DNA of 63,663 nucleotides, filler included, from Choristocarpus tenellus KU-1152 (lineage: Eukaryota > Protista > Phaeophyceae): NCBI GenBank assembly GCA_964200185.2. It is 12 parts of 12 records of this genome, joined end to end, with 100 filler letters (N's around TTAATTAATTAA, not from the genome) between each part and the next. Parts side by side here need not be neighbours in the genome. Positions count along the whole stretch, not along the records: positions 1 to 17,941 come from CAXNAD020000604.1; 11 more parts are not named here. One strand, written 5' to 3'. This document shows positions 1 through 17,941 of the stretch, piece after piece. The translations under genes were made by a program, and so were the position numbers. Position 1 is the stretch's first letter, and each line of letters opens with the position of its first letter. The notes beneath the pieces are model-generated. The model was not told where the DNA came from. It worked only from the letters and a program-made list of their open reading frames with translations, and searched no databases.

Positions 1-40
1 CCCCTCACAAACCACCACCCCCCACTAGATACTTTGACCC
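1..40 (+). mobile_element. MITE family C, 3' terminus
   Basis: cccctcacaaaccaccacccccc..agatactttgaccc matches 56417-56451. Confidence 0.7.
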
Positions 41-340
41 TGGAGCTTGCAAACCCCACTTTCCGCTTGCCCAGTCAGTTCTCTTATGCTTGAATAACCA
101 TTGGCTTGACTGCCTGTGTTTGTCATATCTCTCTTTTCCGTATCCCTGTCCCTGTCCCCACTCCCCTTCGGTCTGAAGAGTCTCTCTTGCCATTTTCCGT
201 CTGTTCCACAGTGGTTACGATGACTAGATATGTGAGCCTAATCAAATACATTACAATACAGCAGGCAAGTACTACATGTGAGGTACGTTCCTTAGTCCAT
301 GATGAAGTAGGAGGAGGAGCGGTAGTAGTAGCAGTAGGTA

Positions 341-837
341 GATGGGTATTACTATGATAGCGATCTTAGCGATGCTCTTATAGAACTTACAATTTTTTCT
401 AATGGTGATGTTGACTTTCGTTAAATTGTGTATGTAGATATCACGGATCGGTTTGTTGAAGATGCGATACAAGAATTGTACGCATACTTGGAAGAAAAAA
501 TGTCAGCAAAAGTAATTGATGAACTATTAAATTAAGGTTATGAAGAGCAAGACTAAAGAATAAGTATTACCAAAGTGGTTTAAAGGAATGCTGCACACAA
601 ACGGTGACCCTGTACAAAGTAGGTTTTCAGGTGTTGAAGTTGACCTTATAGCAGTAGAGTTATCTATGTATGACTTCATAATGGGTAGTGGGTAATGAAA
701 GTTGCACCTAAAACTGTAACTCCGGCACAGATCAATGACTTTGACAAACCTTTAAGGTGGTTTCAAAATAAGAATATTAATGCATATATGGATATATTTG
801 ATTAATTATGGGATTAGGTATTTTATGGTTACAACTA
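341..837 (+). pseudogene. Decayed cluster of small intronless phage-like genes
   Basis: Tail of ORF1 (DGYYYDSDLSDALIEL...SAKVIDELLN*, one internal stop, ends 535). ORF2 at 540-805 (MKSKTKE*VLPKWFKGMLHTNGDPVQSRFSGVEVDLIAVELSMYDFIMGS/WVMKVAPKTVTPAQINDFDKPLRWFQNKNINAYMDIFD*) has one stop and one frameshift. ORF3 starts at 808. Intergenic gaps are 4 and 2 nt. Confidence 0.6.
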
Positions 838-902
838 GCAGCAGTAGTAGTAGTAGTAGTGGCAGCAGCAGCAGCAGCAACAGCAGTTGTAGTAGTAGCA
901 GT
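836..902. repeat. (GTA/GCA)n trinucleotide microsatellite
   Basis: agcagcagtagtagtagtagtagtggcagcagcagcagcagcaacagcagttgtagtagtagcag. Confidence 0.9.
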
Positions 903-3763
903 CAGGTAGAGATAATCCCCATATTAAAATCACAACAACAGTGCGGAAGACATTATCTTAATCATAATAAGCAATATATATGTAATTTATTGTATGTAAA
1001 ATGTATTTGGGACATTGCTTTGATTGCCGTAACCTTCAATGAGATGATCCTCTCTATTTTAAATTGTGTTGGGAAAAACAAGATTTGCATTATATATGTT
1101 GAGATTGCATGTGGTCCTTCCTCCCTGTTTGGGAAATGTGATCCTCATCATGTACCATACGATCATATACAGATACAGTGCTTACAGTACACAATATTCT
1201 ACACAGTGATCCCCACCCCATCCTCAGCACCATTCCTCTAGATCTGCTATCCTGTCTATATGTCTTCCTGCTGCAATGTTTGGGTCAATAATCTTCGTTT
1301 GTGTGCTGGTCCTGTAGTCCATTCTGTGGGTAACTTGTATGAGGAAGTCATTTGGGGCTCAGCACTGAAGAACAATCCCTCAAGCTGTTTGGAGAGGAGA
1401 GATATCTACATGAATAATTTAATGAGGACTCCCTTTGTGTGAACACGGAGTCGGTTCTGAGGTCGTGTAAGAAAATTCCCACTCCGGTTCACAAAAGCAT
1501 TGGGGAAGGGTGGTGTACACCTTGACCACCTTGTACTACAAGTTTTTCAACTGTGACATTTTATCCCATAATATGAACCAACAAAATTAATAAACAACCT
1601 TACAAATACATCATTCCCTACGCTTTTGCACTCCTTCACCTCTTGTGACATGTCCTCTTACATTTGTTGTGTAACTGAGTCCTTCTCTTGCTCTATCCCA
1701 CGCTCAGACTCAATTGTTGGGCAGGTTGTAGTTCAAATGTTTTTGCAAGATGATCTGAACATCATCCCTTCGTAACACATCTTGCATGATGATACACTTT
1801 GCTCATCCCACTCAACAAGGAGTACTTCTCTGTTGACAAATGGTCAAACTCCTGTTGCTCTGCAGCATAGTGATCAGCAAAGTATAGTCAACAGTTCGCT
1901 TCACCGAGAAAGTGATTATCATTAAATGACATCTTCCTCCAATGATGGCGACCGAAGGAATCGAGTATCGACATTTTAGTGAAGAATCTTGACCTTGCCG
2001 AACCAATAAATGAGGACTTACGCCTACCCATCTTCTTCAAACCTACTACCACTGCTGCCTTGAATTCAGCATCCCATAATAGGACTCGGTGCCAGAGCCT
2101 TGAGAAATCCTTTCTTCTCTCCTCTATCACTTGGAGCGTTCAAATGCTCAGTGAATCGGACCCTTGATACAGCTGAAACCCTCACTCCCTATAAAGGTTC
2201 GTGGGTGCAGTATCACAAGAAGGCGTTACATGTCAGACCGATGACATTGATAGTAAATACTGCGAGAGTACACAAAAACTCACACACGGCCACAGCCAAC
2301 ACCGTGGTACAGCAAACAGCCCACAACCGATAATTCAGCTTTTTTTAGCCATGCCTTTATACTCCAAAAATTAACTTGGATATAATATGTAAAAGCTGCA
2401 ACAAAAACACAGTAGGAAACCGAAAAATCATCAATTATTGTCTTCCCCTCTAACCTTTGTCCAACCACTGAAAAGGTACACCTGTTGAAATGGGACTCAG
2501 CATCAGATACGCTGTCCTCTTCCTCTTCACTCATTGCTTCATTGGAGCTTTACCCAACTTCGTCGCCTCCTCCAGTGAGATATACCTAGATATTATGTCA
2601 TTCTTTATGTGACATGGTGAATCTTACTCTCTGGTCCCTTACGCGTCGTATGATCTCTCACTATCGTGACGTCATGAATCCATTTTCGTGACTCTACACC
2701 AAAAAATCGAAACATCTCCTTTTTTCCCTTACCCATAGACCACAGAATATCGAAACCAGATTTTCCCTGAGCAGAAGTTTGACACTGAACCAGATCCTAA
2801 ATAGAGGAGGGATTGTGCTGGCTATCTAATTATTAATCTTTCTTTAGGTATAGAGACGGTTGCACAATAACATATAAGTTATCGAAAGGATGAAATTGAA
2901 AACGGAAAGAATTAGTGTATAGCATTTTACGGAGTAACCAGTAGGAACTAGTTATATGCATAGAAATAGTTTCTAGTATTTCCAGGTGCAGAGTGAGGAG
3001 GAAAAAGGAGAGGCCGCAAAATGCTGTGAGGTCTAACACCACTAATCGTTGTTGGGCAATTTTCCCTGGACTATTTCGGCGACTTGCCCTGGGCTATTTC
3101 GGTGACAGTAAACTTCATACTTTGTAGAGTACATGTACACCAGTGTAGGAATCGTGTAGTTTCTCTACGTCGTACGAGACAACCCTGCAACCTCCAACTC
3201 CAGTCCTTCTTCGTGTTGTAGGTCCCCTTTAGGAAAGCAGCAACAAGGTGGGCTACTCTTAGAATGTCAAGGATGGCAATTTTTAAATAGTGGGCGCATT
3301 GACCTTTAAGTACTCGCCGTTTGTGGCACCCGGTCCACCTGGCGTCGTCGACTAACTACAGAGCCCCTGAAGTCGTGCAGTGCAAAAATATCATGATCGC
3401 TACGTGTTGAATGATCATGCAAATTGTGTTGTCAGAGTTTTAGCCTAATTGTTCCCAGAATAGCAGCCAAAACACTGCATGTGATTGGATCGACAAGTGG
3501 GTGAAAAAACCCTAGTCCTGCATCTATTTAGAGTTGCGTATTGTGAACGAGATAGCTAACCCTGTATTTTCCATTCACTTCTTTTTGCCGTCCTAAGTCC
3601 AACACCATGCCCTGGTTGGTGATCTCAAACCCTTGGAAACCTAATCATTTACTTCGCATTAGTACGTCTCCAGCGTTCAAACACATCTCCGAGGGATGAT
3701 CTTGTCACTATTGATTTTCCTTTCTTTGTCCGTCTCCTCTAAACTGGCTACGTATTTTTCCAG

Positions 3764-3841
3764 CTAATCACACTGAAAGCGGGGTATCAGCGTAAACTTG
3801 ATCTCGAACTTGACTGGAAGGCTTCTAACAAAGACATCAAG
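3764..3841 (+). CDS. Possible upstream non-repeat exon of the ankyrin-like gene (LITLKAGYQRKLDLELDWKASNKDIK)
   Basis: Pyrimidine tract ttttttccag| ... AAG|gtatgg, 78 nt, open in phase 0; no homology support. Confidence 0.35.
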
Positions 3842-4604
3842 GTATGGTTATTCACCACATTGAACACTCAGTACTCCTCTATATGCTGCGGTGTGTGGAT
3901 TATGAATTTAGTGGATATTCAGGCCACCAGGCTGCTACTACATATGTTTCGGTGATTGTGGGCGTTATCAGTGAGTAACATGAGGTTGCAATTTTCCCGA
4001 GACCACTATAAGAATGATTGGAAGGAGCTGTAAACGAAACAGTGGACCTGGTAGGTCTTGTGCTGAGTGCATCAGCTCTGTTCAAAGTCTTCAGGTAAGG
4101 TATATCTTATCTCAAACTTTCAAGGTTTTTAATAAGTACAAGTTGGAGTCGTAAAAATTAATATCCCACAGATTTGACATTTACTTGCGAATGCGTGAAT
4201 GTGGGGTGGCATTAAATCATAAATCGCCCAAAATTCTTCTTGTGCTGATTCGCCCACTCGTGGATACTGGATAAATTGCCCATGCTGCAGAAGAGGAGTA
4301 TAATCGTTATGTGATTATGTTATATACCTTCCTCTTTCACTCCTTTAGTCGGTTTGGGCTGAAGTATATGATCGGTGATGGTCGGTAATACTCCGAATAA
4401 TTGACACACAACATGTTTGGCGAATTTTGGCCTTAGGATATGGGACATAAACATCGCCTCTCAATCTTTGTGGTAGGCTAATTACTCACTTTCTGTGGAT
4501 TCATCGAGACAAAGAATCATTGAGTCTATGCCCCATCAACGTGCATGTCCCTAGTTTCTATGACTACGAGGTTTGAAGACCGGTTAGCCTCTACAACCTT
4601 TCAG

Positions 4605-4730
4605 GTCATGGAGCGACAACTTGATGAGAATGAAGATGGACAGACCCTTGTGATGAGGGCAGCATCACAAGGCAAATGGAAAGTTGTCACTACTATGTTG
4701 GAGAGGCTAATGATACTTCCTGAAGACAAG
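4605..4730 (+). CDS. Repeat exon 1 (VMERQLDENEDGQTLVMRAASQGKWKVVTTMLERLMILPEDK)
   Basis: ttcag|GTC...AAG|gtgagc; 126 nt; divergent, possibly an N-terminal cap repeat. Confidence 0.8.
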
Positions 4731-7700
4731 GTGAGCTTACCTTCTACGATTCGTTGTTGGGTAGGTGGGTCATTTTATGCCTTGTCTTTAGATCCCTCTA
4801 CTGTACTGTGTACCTACTGGTCCTCTTTTGAGTACATGTTGTATTGTCCTTGTGTCCTTGCACCGGGTATGGAGATATGATGAAGTTGAAGCACTCTTAC
4901 CCATGTGGTTTTTGGTGTACCCTCTTGCTCGATACATCAGCAAAACAGACCTTCTTGTTGACCTAACATATTGCACTGGATAGAGTTATTTATCCCGACT
5001 GCTTTCATAGTGTGTTCAGCATAACCAAAGTGGAAGCGACTGGGAATGCCCCTCATTTGGTCAGGTGATGAAGCTACTCACTACCAAGGATGGATGCGGA
5101 CTTACCCTCCTGATGAACGCTATATCAGCACGTGAGAGTGGAACCTTCTCTGAAGTGCTGAGTACTGTGAGGAAGATGATTTCCAAAGATAAGGTGTGAG
5201 GGCAGAATGCTACAAATTACAGTATGCTTTGGCGCCTTGGATGATATCTCACTGAATCATGAGGTTGGCATTCATTGCGAATGTGTAGGTTCTGTTGCAT
5301 TTCCAAGTAGATTGTTCTATGCTTATGATGGATTGATCTGCGGTATTTTTGAGTGTAGAGTGTAGTCTTTCTTAGTGGGAGGTGCAGTGTCAGGAAATCT
5401 TTAATTATATCGTGGTCTGATCATCACCTTAGCCCATCTGTTGATGTATAACATTATCACAAGCTGAAGTAGATGGATGTTCAATGGAACGTTTTCCCCT
5501 ATTGATGCATGAAGTGATTGCAGTAGCAAGGTCCATTACTAGAGCAGGTTGTTATCACATACATGTGTAAATAGGGTTCAAAATGTGTTTGCACCAAGTA
5601 CATGTTAACGGTTGCAGGGTACGGGTGAACTGCAATTTTCCCGCGTCATCCATTTTCATATTATATCATTGATATTCTCTTTATTAATGGATCATATATG
5701 GTATATTTTGGTATTTAGTATGTTGTCGACGAGGCACAGTGTAGTATCCACGGAATGATACTTCCACACTGTTGACATCAATGTGGAAACCTGGACTATC
5801 AATGAGCGCCTCACTGCCTCACAGTTAGGAGCGAGCAGTAGTTGTACATGGTTGTAGACGAGGGGTAGTAGGAGACTGCAGCAATTCAGTGGACCCCGGT
5901 CTCTTGTGCACCACTATGTTCAACACTACCCTGATTGGTGTGATGGATGAAGTGAGTTAAGTTCAAACAGCTCGCTTGTTAGCAGTAGCTGACATGAACT
6001 CAGAGAACACTACTACATATGTACAAGTCATGTTTCTCTGGTACCTAATGATACATAAATTACTGGGGTTAGTCGGCTGTGCTTGGCATGCTACAAGTTA
6101 CTCCAAGACAAATTACTGGGGTAGTAGGAGTGCACTACCGCATCCTGGTCACAAAAGGAAGGCAGTAGCCAGTTGTGATGGTTGCAATTGGGAGACAGGA
6201 GTACGTCACAGGATTATTGCTAAAAAATAGCATTGTCAGTTACAAGTTTGTTTGATCATAGTAGTATTTTTCTGTACATGGATGGAATGCTGGAGACATA
6301 AAGCGCAAAGAGATGATTGCGAAATGGAGTAACCAAGCACACAAGAGTATGTCCAAGAGGCGCCCAGGAGTGAAAGAAAGAGTATCTTCACCACATGTTC
6401 GTCAGAGGTAAAGAGACGAACACAGCAACAACAGGGGGTGCAGACCACTCCCACCTCCGTCCCTCTATTGCATTGTTTAGAGAGTGGATCTCGCATCTCC
6501 CATCTCTAACGTTTTCTACAAATTGGGGGTCCAGTGAAAGGAAATCCTTATCCCCTTGCACCCACATATACTCTTGATGATACCCTCAAGTTCTCAATCT
6601 TGAGTGGCAGTTAGGTTGCCAAGGTGGTCTTAGTTAGACGATGGCCTACAAATCCCACTACCTTTTGGCACCTTGCAAGGGGTCTGATTACACTGGGAGC
6701 AATGAGCGCGGACAGAGGGGTAGAAAGTGCCACACTTCCAACGAACATTGATTGCCGAGGTTACCAAGGGCAAGCCAGGTCAAAAATCCTTGACATATAC
6801 TCACCTGCCCTGTATGTGGCACAGGGTGCAAGGAAAGGCAAGTACCCTCAAACGACCTTTCTGCAAATAATACGATGAAAAGGTGAAAATATCACACAGT
6901 TTGCCATCATACAATTTAGGTCTCAACAACGACCACAGGTACCCAGGTACCTGGGTAGCTTCATTTATGGGGGGCTGTAATCACGCGCCCATATAGTGCA
7001 TGCAAAAACGCCGGCAGGGCTGCATCCCACCCTCCAAAGCGGTCTTGTGCGCGATTTATAAGAAGCTCCGCTCAGTTTCACAATAGCGGTACTTCCATAA
7101 AGTATAAATATCTCCTCGCATCTCTTCGACAATCCTTCCTGCCTTTCTCTGCAATTTCCATTAGTTTGTATTAATTTTCAGTGCCCTGCTGATGACAATG
7201 ACGATATTGGACGTAATAGATCCCTAGTTAGGACCAAAAAAATGCATCTACTGTTTTGTAGTTCATTTCTGTCGTATTTTCCACCCCCCACAGTCATTTT
7301 ACATACATGAGTCATGTGCTTAAGCTATACCTGCATATATATAATCTATATGTGTACGTGTTCCTTTTTTTGCGGAGTTTGGTCGATGATCAGGGATGCA
7401 CCTCAAGATTATTATTAATGTACTGATTGATATACAAAAAGATCAAAGAATAAGAGGCATCATATTTTATGGACGAAATTTACTTGGAGGACACAAGTGG
7501 TAATCATTAAACAATAATATCGTTGTCATTTCTACACGTTCGGAGAGGTCGAGATTCGATTCGAGGATAGTACAAGATGTGGTGCAATAAGATTTGATTC
7601 AAGTAAAAAAAAAAATCGCCATTGATTGTTTAGATCAAGTAAGAAAAATTATATTCAAAGAGCATACTATTAGAATAGTATTATTCCCAGAACCAATGTT

Positions 7701-10700
7701 CCTTACATAAACATGTCTACTATAACGTAACATAAAATCCTTAACCATGCAAACAAAGCACAACAACTGTTATCTGTAGCTAGGTAGAGGCACAACTCGA
7801 CAGGTCTTGCTAACTTTCTCTGGTTGCTGTAGGCTTAAATATTCTTGATGTAACAAACTTGGAGGTAGAAATAATATAGTTTCAAACAAACTACAGACAA
7901 CCTGAACCCTTACATATTATTCCAATATTAAGTACGGCAATATAATTCAAGCATCTAAATATGTTAGCAGGAAAGATACTTGGGACTCAACCGAGAGGAA
8001 GGAGGAGACCAGATAATGCATAGCACTGCTATCAGACTAAGATGTTTATTATGTAACCAAGGTGTGGTGTAAGAAGCAAGAAACTCGAGTAACATGAGAT
8101 AAATTTTGACGTACTATACGATCAAACGGCTCACAAGGTGGGGAACTCCCTATCTTGTTCTTTTCTGGTTTATTACAGGGTTTTTTTGTCGTCTGTTGAG
8201 GCCAAGTGTTTAGAACGTGCGTGCGGAAAAGTCTGCTTCTCGCACGTCTGGATGTATTTATGTGCGTGTAAGTCCAAAGCTCCATACACTGTTAATGCGC
8301 GTGTGTAAGAACGGGGACCTCACGTAATAATCAACATCCTGACCTCAGAGGAAAAGAGATACGGCACAGACCTCCCTTCGACCCGTTCTGTCAACATAAT
8401 TCCCACATCGCTTTGTCATTTGAGCTGTGTCATTTTGATGCCCGTATCGAAGGGGGACAGCGGCTATATAGCTACATAGCATTACCTCAAATATGTCTGT
8501 CTCTGGAATGATCTTAGATGGGGGTGCTGTTAAAGTAGCATTTGGTTACCCTGTGACTCCCTTGTAGTATGTGTGGTTCTAGCACTCTGGAGGGCGATTT
8601 CGTGCTTATTATGTTGATGAATGTCTGTGTTCCCTTTGACAGGCACAAAAAGTGGCACCAGAGGCATTTCAGACATTGGAATGAGGAATCAGGCAAGGAG
8701 GTTTGGAAGTCCTTCATAATACTTGCGAGGGAGTGAAAGTATCTTAGGGGTTACGAATTTTGCCGTGTTTGTCCGTTTGGGGCTTGGCTTCCCAGGGGTT
8801 TTTTAGTGACACTTTCCTACTCTGAAATGTTTCGGAGTCGGTGAAATGTGTACGTATTGAAAAGGTGTGCCCGGGATAAGGATATTGACAAATTCTAACA
8901 AAGACGATAGCCGAAATTATATCAAAATCGAAAAATTGGATTTTGACCTCCAAACGGACGCGGCTCTACCCTAAAAGATACTTTGACTCAAGGGCTTAAA
9001 TATATTTCCTCAAAGAAAGGATGGCTCAGTATGACATGGTTTTTATTAAAGAACTCTTATGTTGCTTTTTGAAAGTTATCCTTATTGAAACATAACATTA
9101 TGTCTAGAATACTTACTGCCTTCACTCCACATAGAGCATACAATATATGTATGGTATACATTGTATCATCCCTTGGATAGCTGCAGGGAACGCCATCGGC
9201 AACTAAGTGTTGATACCATATTCTCCTCAACAATAAAATCTGCTAAATGTCTGTGGGGATAAAATGCCAAATACCACGAAAAAAAATATTGTGATTGTCC
9301 TAGCTAGGGAGATAGAATGAGAGATATAAAGGAAAATTGGTTATACATGGTTGGAAACGAATGTAGGAGAGGATTGTTGAGATTGTTTCATTACTACTTT
9401 CTATTATCGTACTTATCTACACCACACTGCTGTGGAGGATTGTAAAATATCAATAAGCTAACCCTAAACCTTGCGGTGCAGCATCTCCCAGGTCGGCATA
9501 TATGGAGACGAAGAGTCTTTCAATGAGTAGCGTTCGTCACAGAGGGAAGTTGCCTCAACAAGGATTCCAAGTTTTCGAATCAAAGCGTTGATGAGTATAA
9601 TGGACTATCAATGTTATAGTATACTACTTAAGCACTAAAAAAGGATGAGAAAATTAACTTACAATATTAGTGTTATCTTCCTTGCTCAATAAATTGGAAA
9701 TGAGTAGTTTTGTAAACAATACACTCCTTTGAACCCTATCAAGATAAATTACATTATTCAATAAAATACCCTGGAATAAGTCTTTGATTACTGCCTTTTG
9801 AGTAGACATCCTTCGAAACGGGATTGGCATTGTTTTGTCTAAGGTAAGAGCCAAAGCATCTTAGAGGGTGGAGCCGTGTCCATTTGGGGCCCAAAATCCA
9901 ATGTTGCGATTTTGATGTAATTTTGGCTATCGTATTTGTTAGGAAGTGCCAATATCCTTGTTCTGTTACCACCTTTTCATAATGCATACAATTTACCTAC
10001 TCTGAAAAAAATTGTAGTGGGAAAATGTAATAAAAAAAACCACGGGAAACCAAGCCTCAAACGGACAAACAGGGCAAAACTTGTACCCTCTAAGATACTT
10101 TCAATCTAAAATAGACAGATGGTATTTCCAACCATATGGTACACAGACCTTGGCAGGGGCAAAACTTTGTGCGAAGGAAATGTATGCTCCTGCATTGTGG
10201 GGTCATTGCTTCTGTTGGAACCGACCCTTGCGACATGAACATGACAACAAAAAAAGGCAGCCCACACCATCTGTTTGTCACTGAATTATACGACCAATAC
10301 GGACGAGTAGATAACAGAAACAACTCGTTTTCACCTTCGAAACACCAATTCGGCATGTAAAAAGTCAAGTTGACGTGGGGAGTTTGAAGGCTTAATGTCA
10401 GACATTTAGATACATCTCCTAAGTGCTAGTTTTATTCGCTCTAGGCTACTTCAAAGTGTACTTAAGTCAATGGTAGGTTGCTTCAATAAGCACCTACCTT
10501 CCTGTTGCTATTCTAGAAGAAAAGCGAGTTCTTCAGCTGTAGCAGGCACACATGATCATCATACTCCTACCTACCAGGTGTAGGGTGAGGTTCCTATTAG
10601 TTATACTTTATTGTAATTCTCAAAGCACATACTGTACATACTTTGAAATGACTTGGTAGGATGTATATTATATTTTCAAGGGATATATTTCCAAACTGGC

Positions 10701-13700
10701 AAACTCAGACAAGCAACTAGATTGGCTATGCATTTGTGGTGCTTGATCCCTAGTTTGTTCCCATGGCATTTGAATGCACATACAGATCAACCTCTTTTAG
10801 AGCATGTATGTATGTATGTAGTAGTACTCTGTATCATGTCGTGGTCACCTTTAGATTATTTTATCCACTTAATGCAGATAATTCGCGCTAGTAGTACGAA
10901 ACAAAGCTCAAACTCCAGGTCTAGAGACGGATTGACTGGTGACTTCGTTTGAATGTGATGGGATCCATATAGGAGCCATGGATGTAGTAAATGAACTTGA
11001 ATGCGATTTCGTTCTGGACTAGTATTGCTTCTTGAGTGTGTTTCACATGTAGTGAGATACTTTTCTATCTCTCACTATAGTATCTCCGTGCTGACTGGAC
11101 AAAGCCAGTCATTACAAACTAAATATGGCAGCACTCTCATCCGTCTCGATGCCTTGCTAGTTTGTGATGAAGTGAAGCCCGTGCGATTTACTGAACCAGA
11201 AGTACTCATATTGACTTCATCTTCAGTGTTGGAAGTCAAAGAAGTCATAGATGCGTATATGCTGCACCTTGTGGTTGGTCACCAGATGTTGTGTGCAATG
11301 TCAATGTATTCATGTCACTCGGATTGTGCTTTTAATATTGTGATACTTCCATGCCTCTGAAGTTGAAGAATACCTTCTTGCAAACTCTCCTCAGGTGGTG
11401 GAGCTACTCCTGGCCAAAGATGAGTTTGGACTAAACATTTTGATGCATGCAGTACAAAGCCGCACATTTCGCTCTGTACTGAGTGCTCTGGAGGAATTAG
11501 CGCTTCAAGACCAGGTTCTGCTGTCGGTTGTAATTATATATATCGGGATATTGGATCAATTTTTAGGTGGCTAGTATGTAGAAGTAATTCTGTCGCCATT
11601 GGGTGGGATATTGTCACTACTTGATTCTGAATAGTGCTGTAGAAGCTCACGGTTACTTGATGTATATATGTTGGAGTTTTTGCAATTGTGCCAGAACAAG
11701 ATGTCCTGTGTGTGAACCCCTTGGTTGTTGATATAGTGTTTGTTCTATGTATTGTACTTCGAACAACGCCACTTAGAGCATGTTGAACAATTGTACGAAC
11801 CTGATTGATCTATATCTCACTTTCAATTTGGTGTATTTACATGCATGTGATCAAATATCCGTACAGTGGCTTTTTCAAACAGAGTTGCATTCCTCCCTCC
11901 ATAGTCATGCCTTGGGCACAAATGTCATTCTTATGTCATTACATGAAGGGTAGTTTCATCTGTACCGAGTGCACTGTTTCACAACAAAGATAGGGACTGA
12001 TTGTATCCCTGGGCATGCTTCCTTGCTGACAACTGTTAGTTTGTGGAGCTACTCATGGCAAGGGACGGGAACAAGCAAACCATCTTGATGCATGCAGCTA
12101 AAAACCACATCCTAAACTCTGTGTTGGATCATCTGGAGAAGGCTGTGCCTCGACCGAAGGTTAGGTCATTAAACCTATTAGTCCAGATGTCGGGTGGTGC
12201 ATCCGTGGAGGTATTTTCTATTGCTATATGGGTGGGACCTTCGTACTATTTTATGATAAGTGTAAGTGTAGAATTGCATAGGAATTTTAAGCATGCATAT
12301 TGAGTTTTGAACAATGAGTCAGAATAAAAATGCACGACTGAACCACTTGGTTGTTGGTGTCATCTTGTGCTGCTATGGGACTACATATTCTATGATTTCG
12401 TATTGTGATGATTTTTGTCACACTTCTCAGATACAGTTCAATCCATTTTTCTCCAGATCATAAATATTTTAATAATGAAATTTATGACCATGCATTATAC
12501 CCTGTAATGCGAGACACACAATGTGTGTTACATTCCTCCCTCCGTGAACTAGTACATATACAATTTTTTTGCTGTTGTGATAGGGCAGCTCCGTTTGCAG
12601 TTTCACTGCATACTTGAGGACTGAGTTCATGACTGGGCAATCTTCCTTATTTACTGTTTTAAGGTTGTGGAGCTACTCATGGCGAAGGATGAAAACGGTC
12701 AAAACCTCTTGATACATGCAGCTCAAAGTGGATCCGTCATTCTGGGTCACAAACTGAAGCAATTATTGTCACCGACACAGGTACGTTCAGCATTAGTCTA
12801 GCTCTTGATGGCGAAGAATACCGTTTGTGTTTGAGCTAAATTATGCAGTATTGTGAGGGCAGACACGAGAAACCCCTGAGATGTTTGTTTTGTGAAGATG
12901 TTTGACAGGGCCACCAAAACAGTACACAGTTGCACCAAATGTGTGCTCGTTCGGTTGGATACACTGTTGGTGAGTGAAAGTATCTTAGAGGGTACGAGTT
13001 TTGCCTTGTTTGTCCATTTGGGGCTTGGCTTCCCTCGTTTTTTTTAATGACATTTTCCTACTTCCAAATATTTCGGAGCAGGTAAAATGTATACGTTATG
13101 AAAAGGTGTGTCCACAACAAGGATATTGGCACTCCCTAACAAACACGATAGTCAAAATTACATCAAAATCGCAACATTTGATTTTGGCCCCCAAATGGAC
13201 GCGGTTCGACCCGCTAAGATACTTTGACTCTGTTGTGATCCACAAGCGTTAAATATTGTGAAGGCGTGACCTAACTGAAGTCTGAGGGAGAGCATACTTG
13301 TCTTCTTGACTGTTCTCAGGTGGTGGATCTAGTCATGACCAAGGATGAAGCCGGACTAAACATATTGATGTTTGCAACAGCTGATGAGTTATGTTTTTGC
13401 TCCGTCTTGAAAACTCTGGAGGTCTTGTCTCAAGACCAGGTAGAGTTATAATGGTCTTGCCGAAGCATTGGATGATCCATCTATTGTGGACTATGATCCT
13501 ATTCACGTGTGATTATGTCTCTGACGGAAATGCCGTTTGGAATCTGTTATTCGGAGTGTGTTGATCAATATAAGAACCAATATAAAACAAAAGCGCAGCT
13601 GCAGTATGTAATTGCTTGACTAGCCTTGCACAGTATTATAAGTGTTACACGTGACTGCCACAGTTTTTTACGCTTTCATATATCCAAAATCCGATACACG

Positions 13701-16700
13701 CTGCAATTGGCTTTGTTCAGGTGATAGAGGTATTAATGTTCGAGGATGATCGTGGAGAAAATATTTTGATGCATGCAGCAAAGAGTCATGTCTTTAGCCG
13801 TGTGTTGCAGGTTCTGAAGAAAGAGGTACCTCTAGATCAGGTGCGGTCATTGATAGCCTCAGGCCTGGAGTTTGAATGATTCATCTGTGGAAGGTTTTGT
13901 TGTTATGTGGAGGGGGGATTATAACCGTGTTTTCTAACTTGGTGTAAGAGATGGGGGTATTGCATTTTGTGTGTTGTGTAGAGGAGGTTGACAAAAGCCT
14001 CAAAATGAAAAACTCTCCAAAGGACAAACTTAGCAGAACCACTTGTGGTCATTATTTTACTGTTATTTTTGTGCCATAGCGATGATCTGATCTACATTTG
14101 TTTTCTCTATTTAATGCGTATGTTTCTACATTTCTGAATTCTTACAAAAGGTGGCTACAGATTGTGATACTATCGGATCTTGATGCAACCAACGACTTTA
14201 GGGCAGGTACCCAGAGTTGCATTTTGAGGATGCTGACAAATATGTACGAAATTGGTTCATTTTTACAAGTGGTTATAGGATATTTTCTAACTGGTGTCTA
14301 AATTTATATCAACGTTCTTGAGTCAAACTTAGCACTTCATTAATAGAAATATAGGTGAATTGGGAAAGGTGGAAAAATGGACATCAAATGCAAAACACCG
14401 TACCTCTTGTTTATACTATGGCTGATCACCCGCAATATGTAGAGTGTGCCGCTGCATGGTATGTGTATTTTCTATACACATATACATATGCATTCTCGTG
14501 TCTCCCATTGTGGCCTTACTTGGGCAACAGGTCTTCGTTCTTGTGGTATTACACCAAGAGAAGCTATACCTGTACCTTGCAGTCTGATCCATATTGCAAT
14601 CGGGGATTGACTTGGTGCCTGAACTTCCTGTTCTCTTGTGGACTAATGTTGTCAGTTGGTGGAGCTAATGATGGCAAAGAACCAAAGAGGATGTACGCTT
14701 TTGGATGTTGCAGCAAAAGGGTCATGGTTTGATTCCTTGTGGCATCATGTGAAAAAAGTTTTGTCTCCACTACAGGTATGGTCAGTGACAGCTTTGGTCC
14801 TGATATTGGAACTGCTGTGCTGCTGCCCTTGGTGGCCTTGACAATAGTGCAGGTTCATGAGGCTGTAAACTGTAATCTATTTAGATCTGTTGTGTAGTAG
14901 TGCCGCCAAACAGGCGCACAGTTGCTCTATAATATATATTAACGGCAGCTTACTTGACTATTAGTGTGAATAGCGTAATATCACTGTTTGTCATGCTTTC
15001 ATGCCTTTGAGATCTGACTGGGAATGTCCTGTCCCGTGGACCATTTTCAGCTGGCGGAGTTAGTCATGACCAAGGATGAGCTTGGACTAAATCTCTTGAT
15101 GCATGCTGAAGGAATGGTCTTAGGGTCTGTGCTAAGTGCTCTGATGGAGGCATTATGTTCAGGCAAGGTAAGGTGGAAATTGTATTCAACTGATGTTGGA
15201 CGATCTTCCTGGTCATTGCGTAAGATACCCATGATGCAAGGGTTACTCCTTGAGGGTAGTATTATATATTCCTTTTTGCCTTTGAAGTAGTGTCCACACG
15301 CAATAAAATTTGGAAGCAATACCAACAAACACTGTACCTCGTTGTTACTAAAAGGGCTTTCACAGGATGAGTCTTTCACACTGCTTCTGATGTGTTTGTG
15401 TCTCTTAAGTCAGAAATACATCATTCGTTGAATCTGCACAGATAGTGGAGCTAGTCATGGCTACGGATAGGCGTGGTCAAAACCTTCTGATGCATGCTAC
15501 ACGGAACTGCACCCTTAGCTACACATTGCATGTTCTAAAGGAATTGGTTCCTTTGGTTCAGGTACGGTCATCGAGGATATTGGCTCATTTGTTGGATGGC
15601 CAATCTACGGATGGTTTTGTTGTTGTGTTTTCAAGTAGATGGGGTTTTGATACTGTTCCAAAAGGAATGGTATACTTGCTGACGAATGCATTGTGCAGTA
15701 GTGTCAAACAAAACCCAAAAGGTGACAAGTTGAGTAACCTGGTCGGGCATTTATCTCTGCATAGTGTGTGCTGGATGAACTCAACTTACACGGTTTGCTT
15801 GCCATATTGCATCTCTTCACCTTGACTGGGGGCAGTTATGAGTAGTGGTATAATCAAATACGCTATTACATGATCAGATAGGACCTGCTGCAGTGGATGG
15901 TGCACAGGGTAGATACCTAAAATGAATGGGTATATTCACAGGATACTCATTACTAGCCGCACAAGTATTTCAGCAAAAATGATCCCTGAAGTAGTCGAAG
16001 CACCCATTCTCATTCTTGATAGTTCATAATCAAGATGGTATTTCGTACAGATATTATCACCACAGCTCCTACTGCAACTATTATTCCCCTTAAAACTACG
16101 CAAAGCAGTTCATGATTGCGTCTTGTATGCCAAGCGTCCTCGTTTTCACCGGTCACCTACAACAGAAGACTCGGAGTCTTTGGTGTTATTATTATTGCAG
16201 ATGCACCCTTCGATTAATGTTCGTCCCACCCCATAATGGCACTCTCGACAGGTAGTAGTACCCTAGTCTACTTGTTTTCAAATAAGCACCAAGTACTGTT
16301 CCATAATTCGTTTTCCCTACTAATGGGCACAAGGATGCTCTGGGTAATCTTCTGGCGGTAGCTCATGACCTCTACTACACATGATTGACGAGGTGTAGTA
16401 CACCCCTCTCACTCTCACTGTGGCCGTGTTTTGGACATGGATCTTAGTCTTGTTCTAGACCTACAATGACAAGAGTGACTACACCAGGTCTACATACCAA
16501 GTGTACTATTTCACAACAAATGAGTTAGAAACTGACTGGAGATTTGCACGTCTGCAATATGATGTTTTAAATTGTTAGCTTATGGAGCTAGCTATGGCCA
16601 GGGATGAGAGTGGACATACGATTCTCGTTATTGCTACAGAGCGACTATGTTTTTCATCTGTTTTGCATGATTTGAAGGAGGTATTGTCTACGACAAAGGT

Positions 16701-17503
16701 ACGGCAAACCATGTCTGATATTGAAGCTTTTATATGTCCATATGATATACTGGTCTTGTAGGCAGTGAAGTCTCATGGTTTTGTCACATCTCGGTGCTCA
16801 GATACATTGTGCGTTGGAAATTAATAGTATCGCAAGTGTAGATGGGCAAGCCACTGTGTGACTGCTCGCCCAATCTGATCAGTTTGAGTTCAATGTGTCA
16901 ATTACTGTTTTTTATGCTTCCACATCCCTGAAGTCTAACTAGGGTCGCCTTGTTAACTTTTCCCAGTTGATGGAGCTAGCCATGGTCAAGGATAGGAGGG
17001 GACTGAACCTTCTGATGCACGCGGCAGAAAGTACCACATTGTTCGCACTTGTGTTGAATGCTACAAAGGATGTACTATCTCCGGACCAGGTGCAATGGAA
17101 ATGACGTCGTCCAAAGCTTGAATGAGACACCTATATGTGCCCCATGTTACCATCTATACACTGTTCTCTCTTTAAAATCTTGGGGTGTAGGCTTCGACAT
17201 TAGATTGTACATACAGCAGAAGTTGGAAGCAAAGTCAAACACACATGCAGAGGTGTACCATCTACAGTAATATCGCGTCTTGAACTATTGGTGTGATATC
17301 TCTCTGCCATGCTCTGCAATTGCGACGATTTTATGCTTCCTAAGTCAAAAATATCCTCATTGTGTCCTTTCTCTCTGTGCTAGGTGATGAAGCTATTCGT
17401 AGACAAAGATGATTGCGGGAAAACTCTCTTGATGCATGCAGCCCAAAACCAAGTCCTTAGTTTTGGGTTGCATGCCCTGAAGGACTTTGTGCCTCTAGAC
17501 CAG
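4605..17503 (+). CDS. Multi-exon ankyrin-like repeat protein, one ~40-aa repeat per exon (13 exons; 5' start not defined, 3' end truncated by contig end)
   Basis: Thirteen AG..GT-bounded exons of 117-129 nt. All are multiples of 3, phase 0/0 and stop-free. Consensus (V/L)(V/M)EL(L/V)MxKDxxGx(N/T)(L/I)LMHAAx...VLxxLxxx(L/V)(S/P)xx(Q/K) resembles the ankyrin DxxGxTxLHxAA core. Confidence 0.88.
5065..5193 (+). CDS. Repeat exon 2 (VMKLLTTKDGCGLTLLMNAISARESGTFSEVLSTVRKMISKDK)
   Basis: gtcag|GTG...AAG|gtgtga; 129 nt. Confidence 0.85.
5880..6420 (+). mobile_element. Highly decayed Copia-like remnant inside the long intron 5194-11394
   Basis: Broken frames give a protease-like DPG.. segment, HVSLVP, and a pre-integrase-like LPHPG...CDGC motif. 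Confidence 0.3.
8731..8989 (+). mobile_element. MITE family A, full copy
   Basis: GAGTGAAAGTATCTTAG...AAGATACTTTGACTC terminal inverted repeats; ~259 bp; homologous to the other copies. Confidence 0.9.
9848..10106 (-). mobile_element. MITE family A, full copy
   Basis: Reverse-oriented copy flanked by TAA/TAA. Confidence 0.9.
11395..11514 (+). CDS. Repeat exon 3, type A (VVELLLAKDEFGLNILMHAVQSRTFRSVLSALEELALQDQ)
   Basis: ctcag|GTG...CAG|gttctg; 120 nt. Confidence 0.88.
12040..12159 (+). CDS. Repeat exon 4, type B (FVELLMARDGNKQTILMHAAKNHILNSVLDHLEKAVPRPK)
   Basis: gttag|TTT...AAG|gttagg; 120 nt. Confidence 0.88.
12664..12780 (+). CDS. Repeat exon 5, type C (VVELLMAKDENGQNLLIHAAQSGSVILGHKLKQLLSPTQ)
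   Basis: ttaag|GTT...CAG|gtacgt; 117 nt. Confidence 0.88.
12972..13230 (+). mobile_element. MITE family A, full copy in the intron between repeat exons 5 and 6
   Basis: GAGTGAAAGTATCTTAGAGGG...CTAAGATACTTTGACTC. Confidence 0.92.
13320..13439 (+). CDS. Repeat exon 6, type A (VVDLVMTKDEAGLNILMFATADELCFCSVLKTLEVLSQDQ)
   Basis: ctcag|GTG...CAG|gtagag; 120 nt. Confidence 0.88.
13721..13840 (+). CDS. Repeat exon 7, type B (VIEVLMFEDDRGENILMHAAKSHVFSRVLQVLKKEVPLDQ)
   Basis: ttcag|GTG...CAG|gtgcgg; 120 nt. Confidence 0.88.
14656..14775 (+). CDS. Repeat exon 8, type C (LVELMMAKNQRGCTLLDVAAKGSWFDSLWHHVKKVLSPLQ)
   Basis: gtcag|TTG...CAG|gtatgg; 120 nt. Confidence 0.88.
15051..15167 (+). CDS. Repeat exon 9, type A (LAELVMTKDELGLNLLMHAEGMVLGSVLSALMEALCSGK)
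   Basis: ttcag|CTG...AAG|gtaagg; 117 nt. Confidence 0.88.
15442..15561 (+). CDS. Repeat exon 10, type B (IVELVMATDRRGQNLLMHATRNCTLSYTLHVLKELVPLVQ)
   Basis: cacag|ATA...CAG|gtacgg; 120 nt. Confidence 0.88.
16579..16698 (+). CDS. Repeat exon 11, type C (LMELAMARDESGHTILVIATERLCFSSVLHDLKEVLSTTK)
   Basis: gttag|CTT...AAG|gtacgg; 120 nt. Confidence 0.88.
16967..17089 (+). CDS. Repeat exon 12, type A (LMELAMVKDRRGLNLLMHAAESTTLFALVLNATKDVLSPDQ)
   Basis: cccag|TTG...CAG|gtgcaa; 123 nt. Confidence 0.88.
17384..17503 (+). CDS. Repeat exon 13, type B (VMKLFVDKDDCGKTLLMHAAQNQVLSFGLHALKDFVPLDQ)
   Basis: gctag|GTG...CAG|gtgcag; 120 nt. Confidence 0.88.
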
Positions 17504-17941
17504 GTGCAGTCACGAATAAGTTGTCCTGACAGTGGATAGTCCATCCATGTACGTTTCAATTTCACATTTTGGGTAGGGTCCTAGTCTTGTTTACTCTTAT
17601 GAAAGGTGGGATCCTTTCTAAAAGATTAAATCAGTTAGTTTGTTGTATAGGGAAAGTTGCAAAAAGAGTCAAACCAAAGACTCATCAGAACCAGTAAGTC
17701 ATCAATTCTTTCATTGTATGGGTCTGGTGAATGCATGACTCTATCCAATCGCTAATCTGTCCTCGAATTGGTTCCATGTGTATGCTCTTCTGATTGTATC
17801 TTGAAGTAGCGGGTAACGCTCTAGAAATACAAGATATAAATTGGTATGGATCGAAGTACATCTCTTCTCTGTCGCCATGTTTCTGCCATACAGATAACAT
17901 CTTCATGCTATTCAAGCAAGGGGTCAAAGCATCTTGGGGGG

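Follow-up and report, generated by a model that had tools for sequence, protein, structure and literature searches.

A one-repeat-per-exon ankyrin array in Choristocarpus tenellus and its relationship to the TRP-type channels of brown algae

The exon array and its transcript

An array of 13 short exons encoding ankyrin-type repeats was analysed in a stretch of 63,663 nucleotides (the window), which joins 12 parts of the genome assembly of the brown alga Choristocarpus tenellus KU-1152 (GCA_964200185.2). The array lies in the part at positions 1 to 17,941, which is the whole of contig CAXNAD020000604.1 (C604) and has both ends inside a miniature inverted-repeat transposable element (MITE). One repeat per symmetric exon had been predicted from the DNA, and this was found to be correct. 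All 13 exons were confirmed at the predicted positions (Table 1), in phase 0, with lengths of 117-129 nucleotides (nt) divisible by three and no stop codon, each encoding a single ankyrin-type unit of 39-43 amino acids (aa). The AG and GT sites predicted at every exon are present, but in the RNA seen no splicing starts from the GT that follows exon 13, which is read through.

Exon 1 has an ATG in frame at 4608, and a further open stretch in the same frame, likewise with an ATG, was found from 4545. Further upstream a splice-model scan predicted a candidate exon with no match in Pfam, and a second candidate exon was also predicted there (Table 1); tblastn searches with homologs gave no N-terminal exons upstream of 4605. 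Scans with protein and DNA profiles revealed no 14th copy, intact or broken, in this piece, and no extra repeat exon in the 6.2-kb intron 2, where the open AG-GT stretches are without the repeat motif. No tandem repeats were found and no RNA families were matched. The locus is single-copy in DNA apart from the MITEs, and length-limited searches found no annotated protein or ortholog of the gene.

The contig is covered by three runs of one study (X1, X2 and X3), probably of one strain. X1 and X2 are DNA-like, with flat depth and a sequence identical to the contig outside the MITE, and the X1 contig ends at 17941. X3 was read as RNA because most introns have no depth and the exons are joined. 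The spliced transcription that the original prediction called for was observed, as the exon order in X3 contigs is the genomic one and the joints fall precisely where they were predicted. X3 record 17 holds exons 6, 8 and 10 at the positions expected from in-order splicing, and the presence of exons 4, 5, 7 and 9 in it was deduced from bin depth. The record length of 1210 equals exons 1-10 (1209) plus one, which is the sole support for the inclusion of exons 1-3. Most likely, one RNA contig carries exons 1-10 in order and unbranched. A surplus depth at 12545-12664, just 5' of exon 5, is unexplained by record 17 and would fit a retained intron piece or an alternative acceptor.

X3 record 18 has 178 nt (30+120+28), the size of an exon 11 inclusion arm. 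A depth of about 4.2 (9.81 minus 5.6) was left over beside both exon 11 junctions, with none in the adjoining introns. Because this leftover depth flanks both junctions and implies a joint between exons 10 and 12, an in-frame isoform lacking exon 11 probably makes up about 40% of the transcripts, the exon 10-12 junction itself not being among the records listed. Of the exon changes envisaged in the original prediction, one in-frame skip is thus probable, and recent exon duplication or shuffling was not found (exon identity at most 73%).

At the 3' end, X3 record 19 shows exon 12 spliced to exon 13 and then runs unbroken from 17382 to 17586. X3 record 21 spans 17607-17874, and RNA coverage is zero beyond 17874. 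No leftover depth for a junction at 17503 was observed in X3, where the GT after exon 13 is unused and the frame of exon 13 reads through it to a TAG. The tail after exon 13 is homologous to the flanks of the other donors and resembles a former intron. Because of the read-through to a stop and the end of the RNA before the contig edge, the transcript seen encodes neither an effector nor a channel domain, contrary to the proposal that an effector domain was lost past the contig end. No ROC-COR or NB-ARC domain was found on the contig or at the transcript end. The contig carries no linker, S1-S6 or pore exon, although exons beyond the contig or in a minor spliced form are possible.

Table 1. Features of the array locus, with positions counted along the window
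Feature	Position	Strand	Remarks
Candidate upstream phase-0 exon (predicted)	3764-3841	+	26 aa; open; good donor; splice-model scan
Second candidate upstream exon (predicted)	3984-4094
Repeat exon 1	4605-4730	+	42 aa; most divergent of the 13
Repeat exon 2	5065-5193	+	43 aa; intron with MITEs downstream
MITE in intron 2	8731-8989	+	~260 bp; terminal inverted repeats; 3-bp target duplication
MITE in intron 2	9848-10106	-	same ~260-bp family
Repeat exon 3	11395-11514	+	40 aa; predicted helix, loop, helix, helix
Repeat exon 4	12040-12159	+	40 aa; X3 bin depth fits record 17
Repeat exon 5	12664-12780	+	39 aa; X3 bin depth fits record 17
MITE in intron 5	12972-13230	+	very high copy number in all runs
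Repeat exon 6	13320-13439	+	40 aa; listed piece of spliced X3 record 17
Repeat exon 7	13721-13840	+	40 aa; X3 record coordinates and bin depth
Older MITE-like repeat, intron 7	14205-14400		at least 40 genome matches at 71-76%
Repeat exon 8	14656-14775	+	40 aa; listed piece of X3 record 17
Repeat exon 9	15051-15167	+	39 aa; X3 record coordinates and bin depth
Repeat exon 10	15442-15561	+	40 aa; RNA contig graph forks at its 3' end
Repeat exon 11	16579-16698	+	40 aa; acceptor weaker than in the other 12; probably absent from part of the transcripts
Repeat exon 12	16967-17089	+	41 aa; joined to exon 13 in X3 record 19
Repeat exon 13	17384-17539	+	40 aa to 17503, then 11 codons to TAG 17537-17539; terminal in the RNA seen
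Probable 3' untranslated region	17540-17874	+ (RNA unstranded)	transcribed; single-copy; X3 records 19 and 21
MITE start at contig break	17921-17941	+	left contig end (1-40) likewise a MITE end

The ~260-bp MITE family is very abundant, and a poly-G/C subfamily interrupts many contigs of the assembly.

Fold, selection and growth of the repeats

Alignment of the exons gave the unit consensus V-V-E-L-x-M-x-K-D-x-x-G-x-N-L-L-M-H-A-A, with a long helix after it and Q or K as the last residue. The ankyrin hallmark D-x-x-G-x-(T/N)-x-L-x-x-A-A, then helix-turn-helix, is present. A conserved alanine occupies exon position 19 in 13 of the 13 window exons and in most exons of a related array on contig C11132 and of the arrays linked to channels of the transient receptor potential (TRP) type, which are described below. 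A profile built from the window exons only (A1) matched ankyrin chains in the PDB with a best E-value of 1.4e-6, and inclusion of paralog exons (A3) gave a best E-value of 5.9e-14; the PDB matches of the repeat profiles were ankyrin proteins only. Single exons stay below the Pfam cut-offs, with weak matches to Ank_2 for 10 of 33 aligned exons, and a structure search with a single window exon reached Z values up to 3.6, the query being too short. AlphaFold modelling of exon 3 predicted one short helix, then a loop, then two paired helices at 15-21 and 25-39, with a predicted local distance difference test (pLDDT) score of 92. For the homologous Discosporangium array P0100 an ankyrin solenoid was predicted (pLDDT 85, Foldseek E ~1e-8). 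The period is 39-43 aa with an extra linker helix, and not the 33 aa of canonical ankyrins. The motif, the profile matches and the models agree with the ankyrin-type fold proposed earlier, and the window repeat is a long variant of the ankyrin unit.

Exon 5 has language-model look-alikes (similarity 0.97-0.98) among the ankyrin repeats of enterobacterial type III effectors. The exon repeats had no match in NCBIfam and none to Pfam Toxin_15. The likeness to bacterial effectors is one of resemblance only, with no sign of transfer or of a toxin function.

Purifying selection on the repeat exons, which had been suspected from their open frames, is real but moderate, because three results agree on it: conservation of the second codon position (64%, against 49% and 52% at the others), a neutral simulation in which all 13 exons stayed open with a probability of only 4e-6 to 8e-5, and codon models of the window and C11132 exons with an omega of 0.49-0.70. 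In these models, where dS is near saturation, omega = 1 was worse by 6.5 log units. The pairwise dN/dS among the window exons was 0.54. Several alignment columns had a pN of 0.6-0.76, corresponding to hypervariable surface positions.

DNA identity between exon pairs ranged from 51 to 73%, with no recent pair. Exon and flank appear to have been copied together, since the short intron flanks share a faint homology between exons. Pairs three positions apart were more alike, with an excess of 2.6-3.2 points in the exons, the upstream flanks and the downstream flanks (p 0.006-0.011 for each, the three-exon period having been picked by eye). Exons 4, 7, 10 and 13 cluster in the tree (86/73), and intron lengths roughly track the same period. 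In view of the lack of recent exon pairs and of the weak period of three exons, the sequences suggest that the array arose by old tandem duplication, partly of three-exon blocks, and not by ongoing shuffling.

Relatives of the array

The search for paralogous arrays recommended with the original prediction was carried out exon by exon and gave 59 matches on about 18 contigs of the Choristocarpus genome. On contig C2600 three repeat exons come first, then a linker exon (371 aa), one membrane exon and finally a pore exon, which matches Ion_trans (E 6e-13) and PKD_channel. Related pore exons were found on at least eight contigs of the genome. C518 carries, on the minus strand, a separate array with about 17 repeat exons (39 aa each), in some of which the donor is lost or the frame is shifted. 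The end of C518 and the start of C2033 share an exact 64-bp overlap, and the TRP-type channel on C2033 contains a frameshift and stops; the C518-C2033 locus is a probable pseudogene. Spaced matches to the repeat profile were also seen on C4364 (seven), C21917, C8926, C5584, C8266, C22917 and C6902. Two pairs of TRP-type loci, C16707/C11201 and C731/C12025, share 94-98% DNA identity and are recent duplicates or haplotypes.

The closest relatives were found on the minus strand of C11132, which carries four closely related repeat exons. In the last of them (L022:2859-2978) GC replaces GT and a stop follows immediately, and no channel exon was found within 2.8 kb after the array. A second channel-less paralog may have its 3' end here. 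C11132 was tried as a direct continuation of the window contig and rejected; it was treated as a paralog because the target-site flanks of the MITEs disagree (AAG versus TTT) and no junction was present in the RNA. The window exons scored 33 bits on the profile of C11132, 20 on that of C2600 and C4643, 19 and 15 on those of the Discosporangium proteins P0039 and P0100, and 3-5 on bacterial or canonical ankyrins. In the tree, exons 2-13 grouped weakly (87/70) with the repeats of C11132, C2600/C4643 and P0039, and the C518 exons formed a clade of their own (96/94). Window and C11132 exons were mixed, at an old depth.

A search of 1.8 billion proteins returned mostly 33-aa ankyrins, together with two Discosporangium proteins with the long unit. 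Discosporangium, which belongs to the same order as Choristocarpus, has the closest protein relatives. On the contigs of the two proteins each repeat occupies a phase-0 exon of its own, with the cut at the same Q|V position, and the same channel exons come after the array. Ion_trans/PKD_channel exons were found to follow the repeat exons in C2600, P0039, P0100, P0157, P0152 and P0155, and the relative P0164 of Ectocarpus siliculosus is named 'Transient Receptor Potential Channel'. The number of repeat exons differs widely: about three in P0152 (a TRP-type channel relative), about 7-9 in P0155 of Pylaiella, and 25 consecutive phase-0 exons of 40-50 aa with a clear two-exon period before the channel in P0157 of Scytosiphon promiscuus. 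The P0157 array is the largest and most regular seen, and is a better object than the window array for the question of a spring or of shuffling. In Choristocarpus C4643 (L024:6851-8146) as well as in Discosporangium (P0039:249-371), a TRP-type channel has a SPRY domain inserted into its ankyrin array. In P0093 of Cladosiphon okamuranus the same long ankyrin repeats are followed by a short hydrophobic C-terminal domain instead of a channel; this C-terminus has no Pfam match, and a search with P0093 found nothing like it in the Choristocarpus genome. No ROC-COR, NB-ARC or kinase domain was found in any of the brown algal homologs.

Origin of the gene and comparison with known systems

Taken together, the results favour, with moderate confidence, a maintained and expressed channel-less ankyrin gene descended from the N-terminal ankyrin domain of brown algal TRP-type channels. 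On this evidence the gene itself does not count as a channel, because the transcript seen is without a membrane part. Its array would have grown through old tandem duplications in which cassettes of exon plus flank were copied, in part as blocks of three exons, as phase-0 symmetry permits. The product, about 535 aa and a further N-terminus, would fold into a soluble ankyrin solenoid, and skipping of exon 11 would give a 12-repeat form. Judging from its ancestry, the protein would most likely act in TRP/calcium signalling, as a protein-binding scaffold or modulator that attaches to the tails of the channels or to their partners. Several observations weigh against this account. No channel-less ortholog was found in other species, and the omega value is higher than a maintained gene would lead one to expect. 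The donor site following exon 13 is a strong one (score 12.5), and the contig ends in a MITE about 400 bp past exon 13. Moreover, the RNA support is one low-depth (4-10x), unstranded contig set, the RNA nature of which was itself inferred, and an unspliced piece of intron 12 is present in X3, so the read-through could be immature RNA.

The same donor and contig end bear on a different account, in which the contig holds the 5' half of a full ankyrin-TRP channel and the rest lies on another contig past the MITE. The array would then serve the channel as a cytoplasmic tether or sensor, in a TRPA/TRPN-like design, and the RNA that reads through would be either unspliced or terminated early. Almost all other arrays of the type found in brown algae lead into a channel, and several channel contigs of the genome lack the 5' part; C2600 and C8665 start in the same MITE family, with a 3-bp flank (TAG) one base apart from that of the window contig (AAG). 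This flank match is, however, weak given the thousands of MITE copies, and the C2600 exons are less window-like than those of C11132. The depth of X3 at 17503 is moreover fully explained without a junction, and coverage stops short of the contig edge. A channel divided between contigs appears rather unlikely. Decay is common in the family here, as seen in the frameshift and stops of C2033 and the lost donors of C518, and the intron-like tail past exon 13 would also fit a transcribed relic: a gene would have been severed from its channel, for example by a MITE insertion, so recently that the frame of the remaining 5' part survives, and the selection measured would be historical. With 13 of 13 exons open, 12 canonical introns and splicing across 13 kb, only a very recent loss would fit, and a relic is considered improbable.

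An exon-shuffling variable recognition receptor, similar to the LRR-ROCO or NB-ARC-TPR proteins of Ectocarpus, had been the original proposal. The symmetric one-repeat exons, the hypervariable surface positions, the probable skip isoform and the wide variation of repeat number across the family are in its favour. The array is nevertheless a single-copy locus without recent exon copies, and its homologs lead into TRP channel domains and lack the effector domains expected of such a receptor. No difference from the two DNA runs was observed outside the MITE, and a single RNA contig most likely contains exons 1-10 in their genomic order. Membership of this immune receptor class is accordingly regarded as very improbable, and descent from a TRP-type channel with loss of the channel part is preferred.

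ShET2/EspL2-like ankyrins of enterobacterial non-LEE type III effectors are the nearest look-alike of one exon by language-model features, but the window gene is spliceosomal and algal, and the bacterial 39-aa arrays tested scored only 5 bits. The LRR-ROCO and NB-ARC-TPR genes of Ectocarpus, in which repeat-per-exon LRR and TPR genes were already described (PMC3341825, PMC11378527), have in common with the window gene one repeat per symmetric exon and the possibility of in-frame alternative splicing, which is probably present here. In contrast to them, the window gene encodes ankyrin and not LRR or TPR units, on unequal exons and without an NTPase domain; its exons are old and divergent, and neither shuffling between loci nor positive selection was demonstrated.

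The closest likeness is to the brown algal ankyrin-TRP channels (Discosporangium CAM9436038.1 and CAM9146128.1, Ectocarpus P0164), which share the same long unit, the phase-0 intron position, one repeat per exon and similar intron sizes. They differ from the window contig in having the linker, S1-S6 and pore exons, whereas the RNA seen here stops after repeat 13. The TRP channel family is strongly expanded in brown algae (10.1101/2024.02.19.579948; PMC11085791). A tentative extension of the present results is that modular exon-encoded ankyrin tails may tune these expanded channels, with a length that differs between lineages through exon duplication (about 3-25 units) and within one cell through skipping, and with channel-less copies, maintained by selection, acting as soluble modulators or decoys. 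If true, brown algae would have a third system with one repeat per exon, and its link would be to sensing and not to immunity of the nucleotide-binding, leucine-rich repeat (NLR) type. The architecture of the TRP tails across the family is more interesting than the window gene itself, a probable channel-less offshoot. TRP ankyrin tails with one repeat per exon occur across Discosporangiales and Ectocarpales, as separate expansions in separate genes. This is awkward for a screen of Ectocarpus in which such exon arrays were almost only found in LRR and TPR genes (PMC3341825); the screen kept identical-length exons only, and the exons of the TRP tails alternate in length. In an incomplete coverage of the literature, no publication was found that describes algal TRP channels with ankyrin tails built of one repeat per exon.

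A similar design, a long ankyrin array before a TRP-type pore, is known from animal TRPN/NOMPC and TRPA1 (PMC4494053) and is shared by the relatives of the window gene. Animal TRPN keeps about 28 repeats despite divergent intron positions (PMC4494053), whereas the algal family has about 3-25 units of 39-50 aa, one per exon; the likeness is one of design. In contrast to the constant TRPN, the algal family is a natural length series for asking whether the number of ankyrin repeats sets gating.

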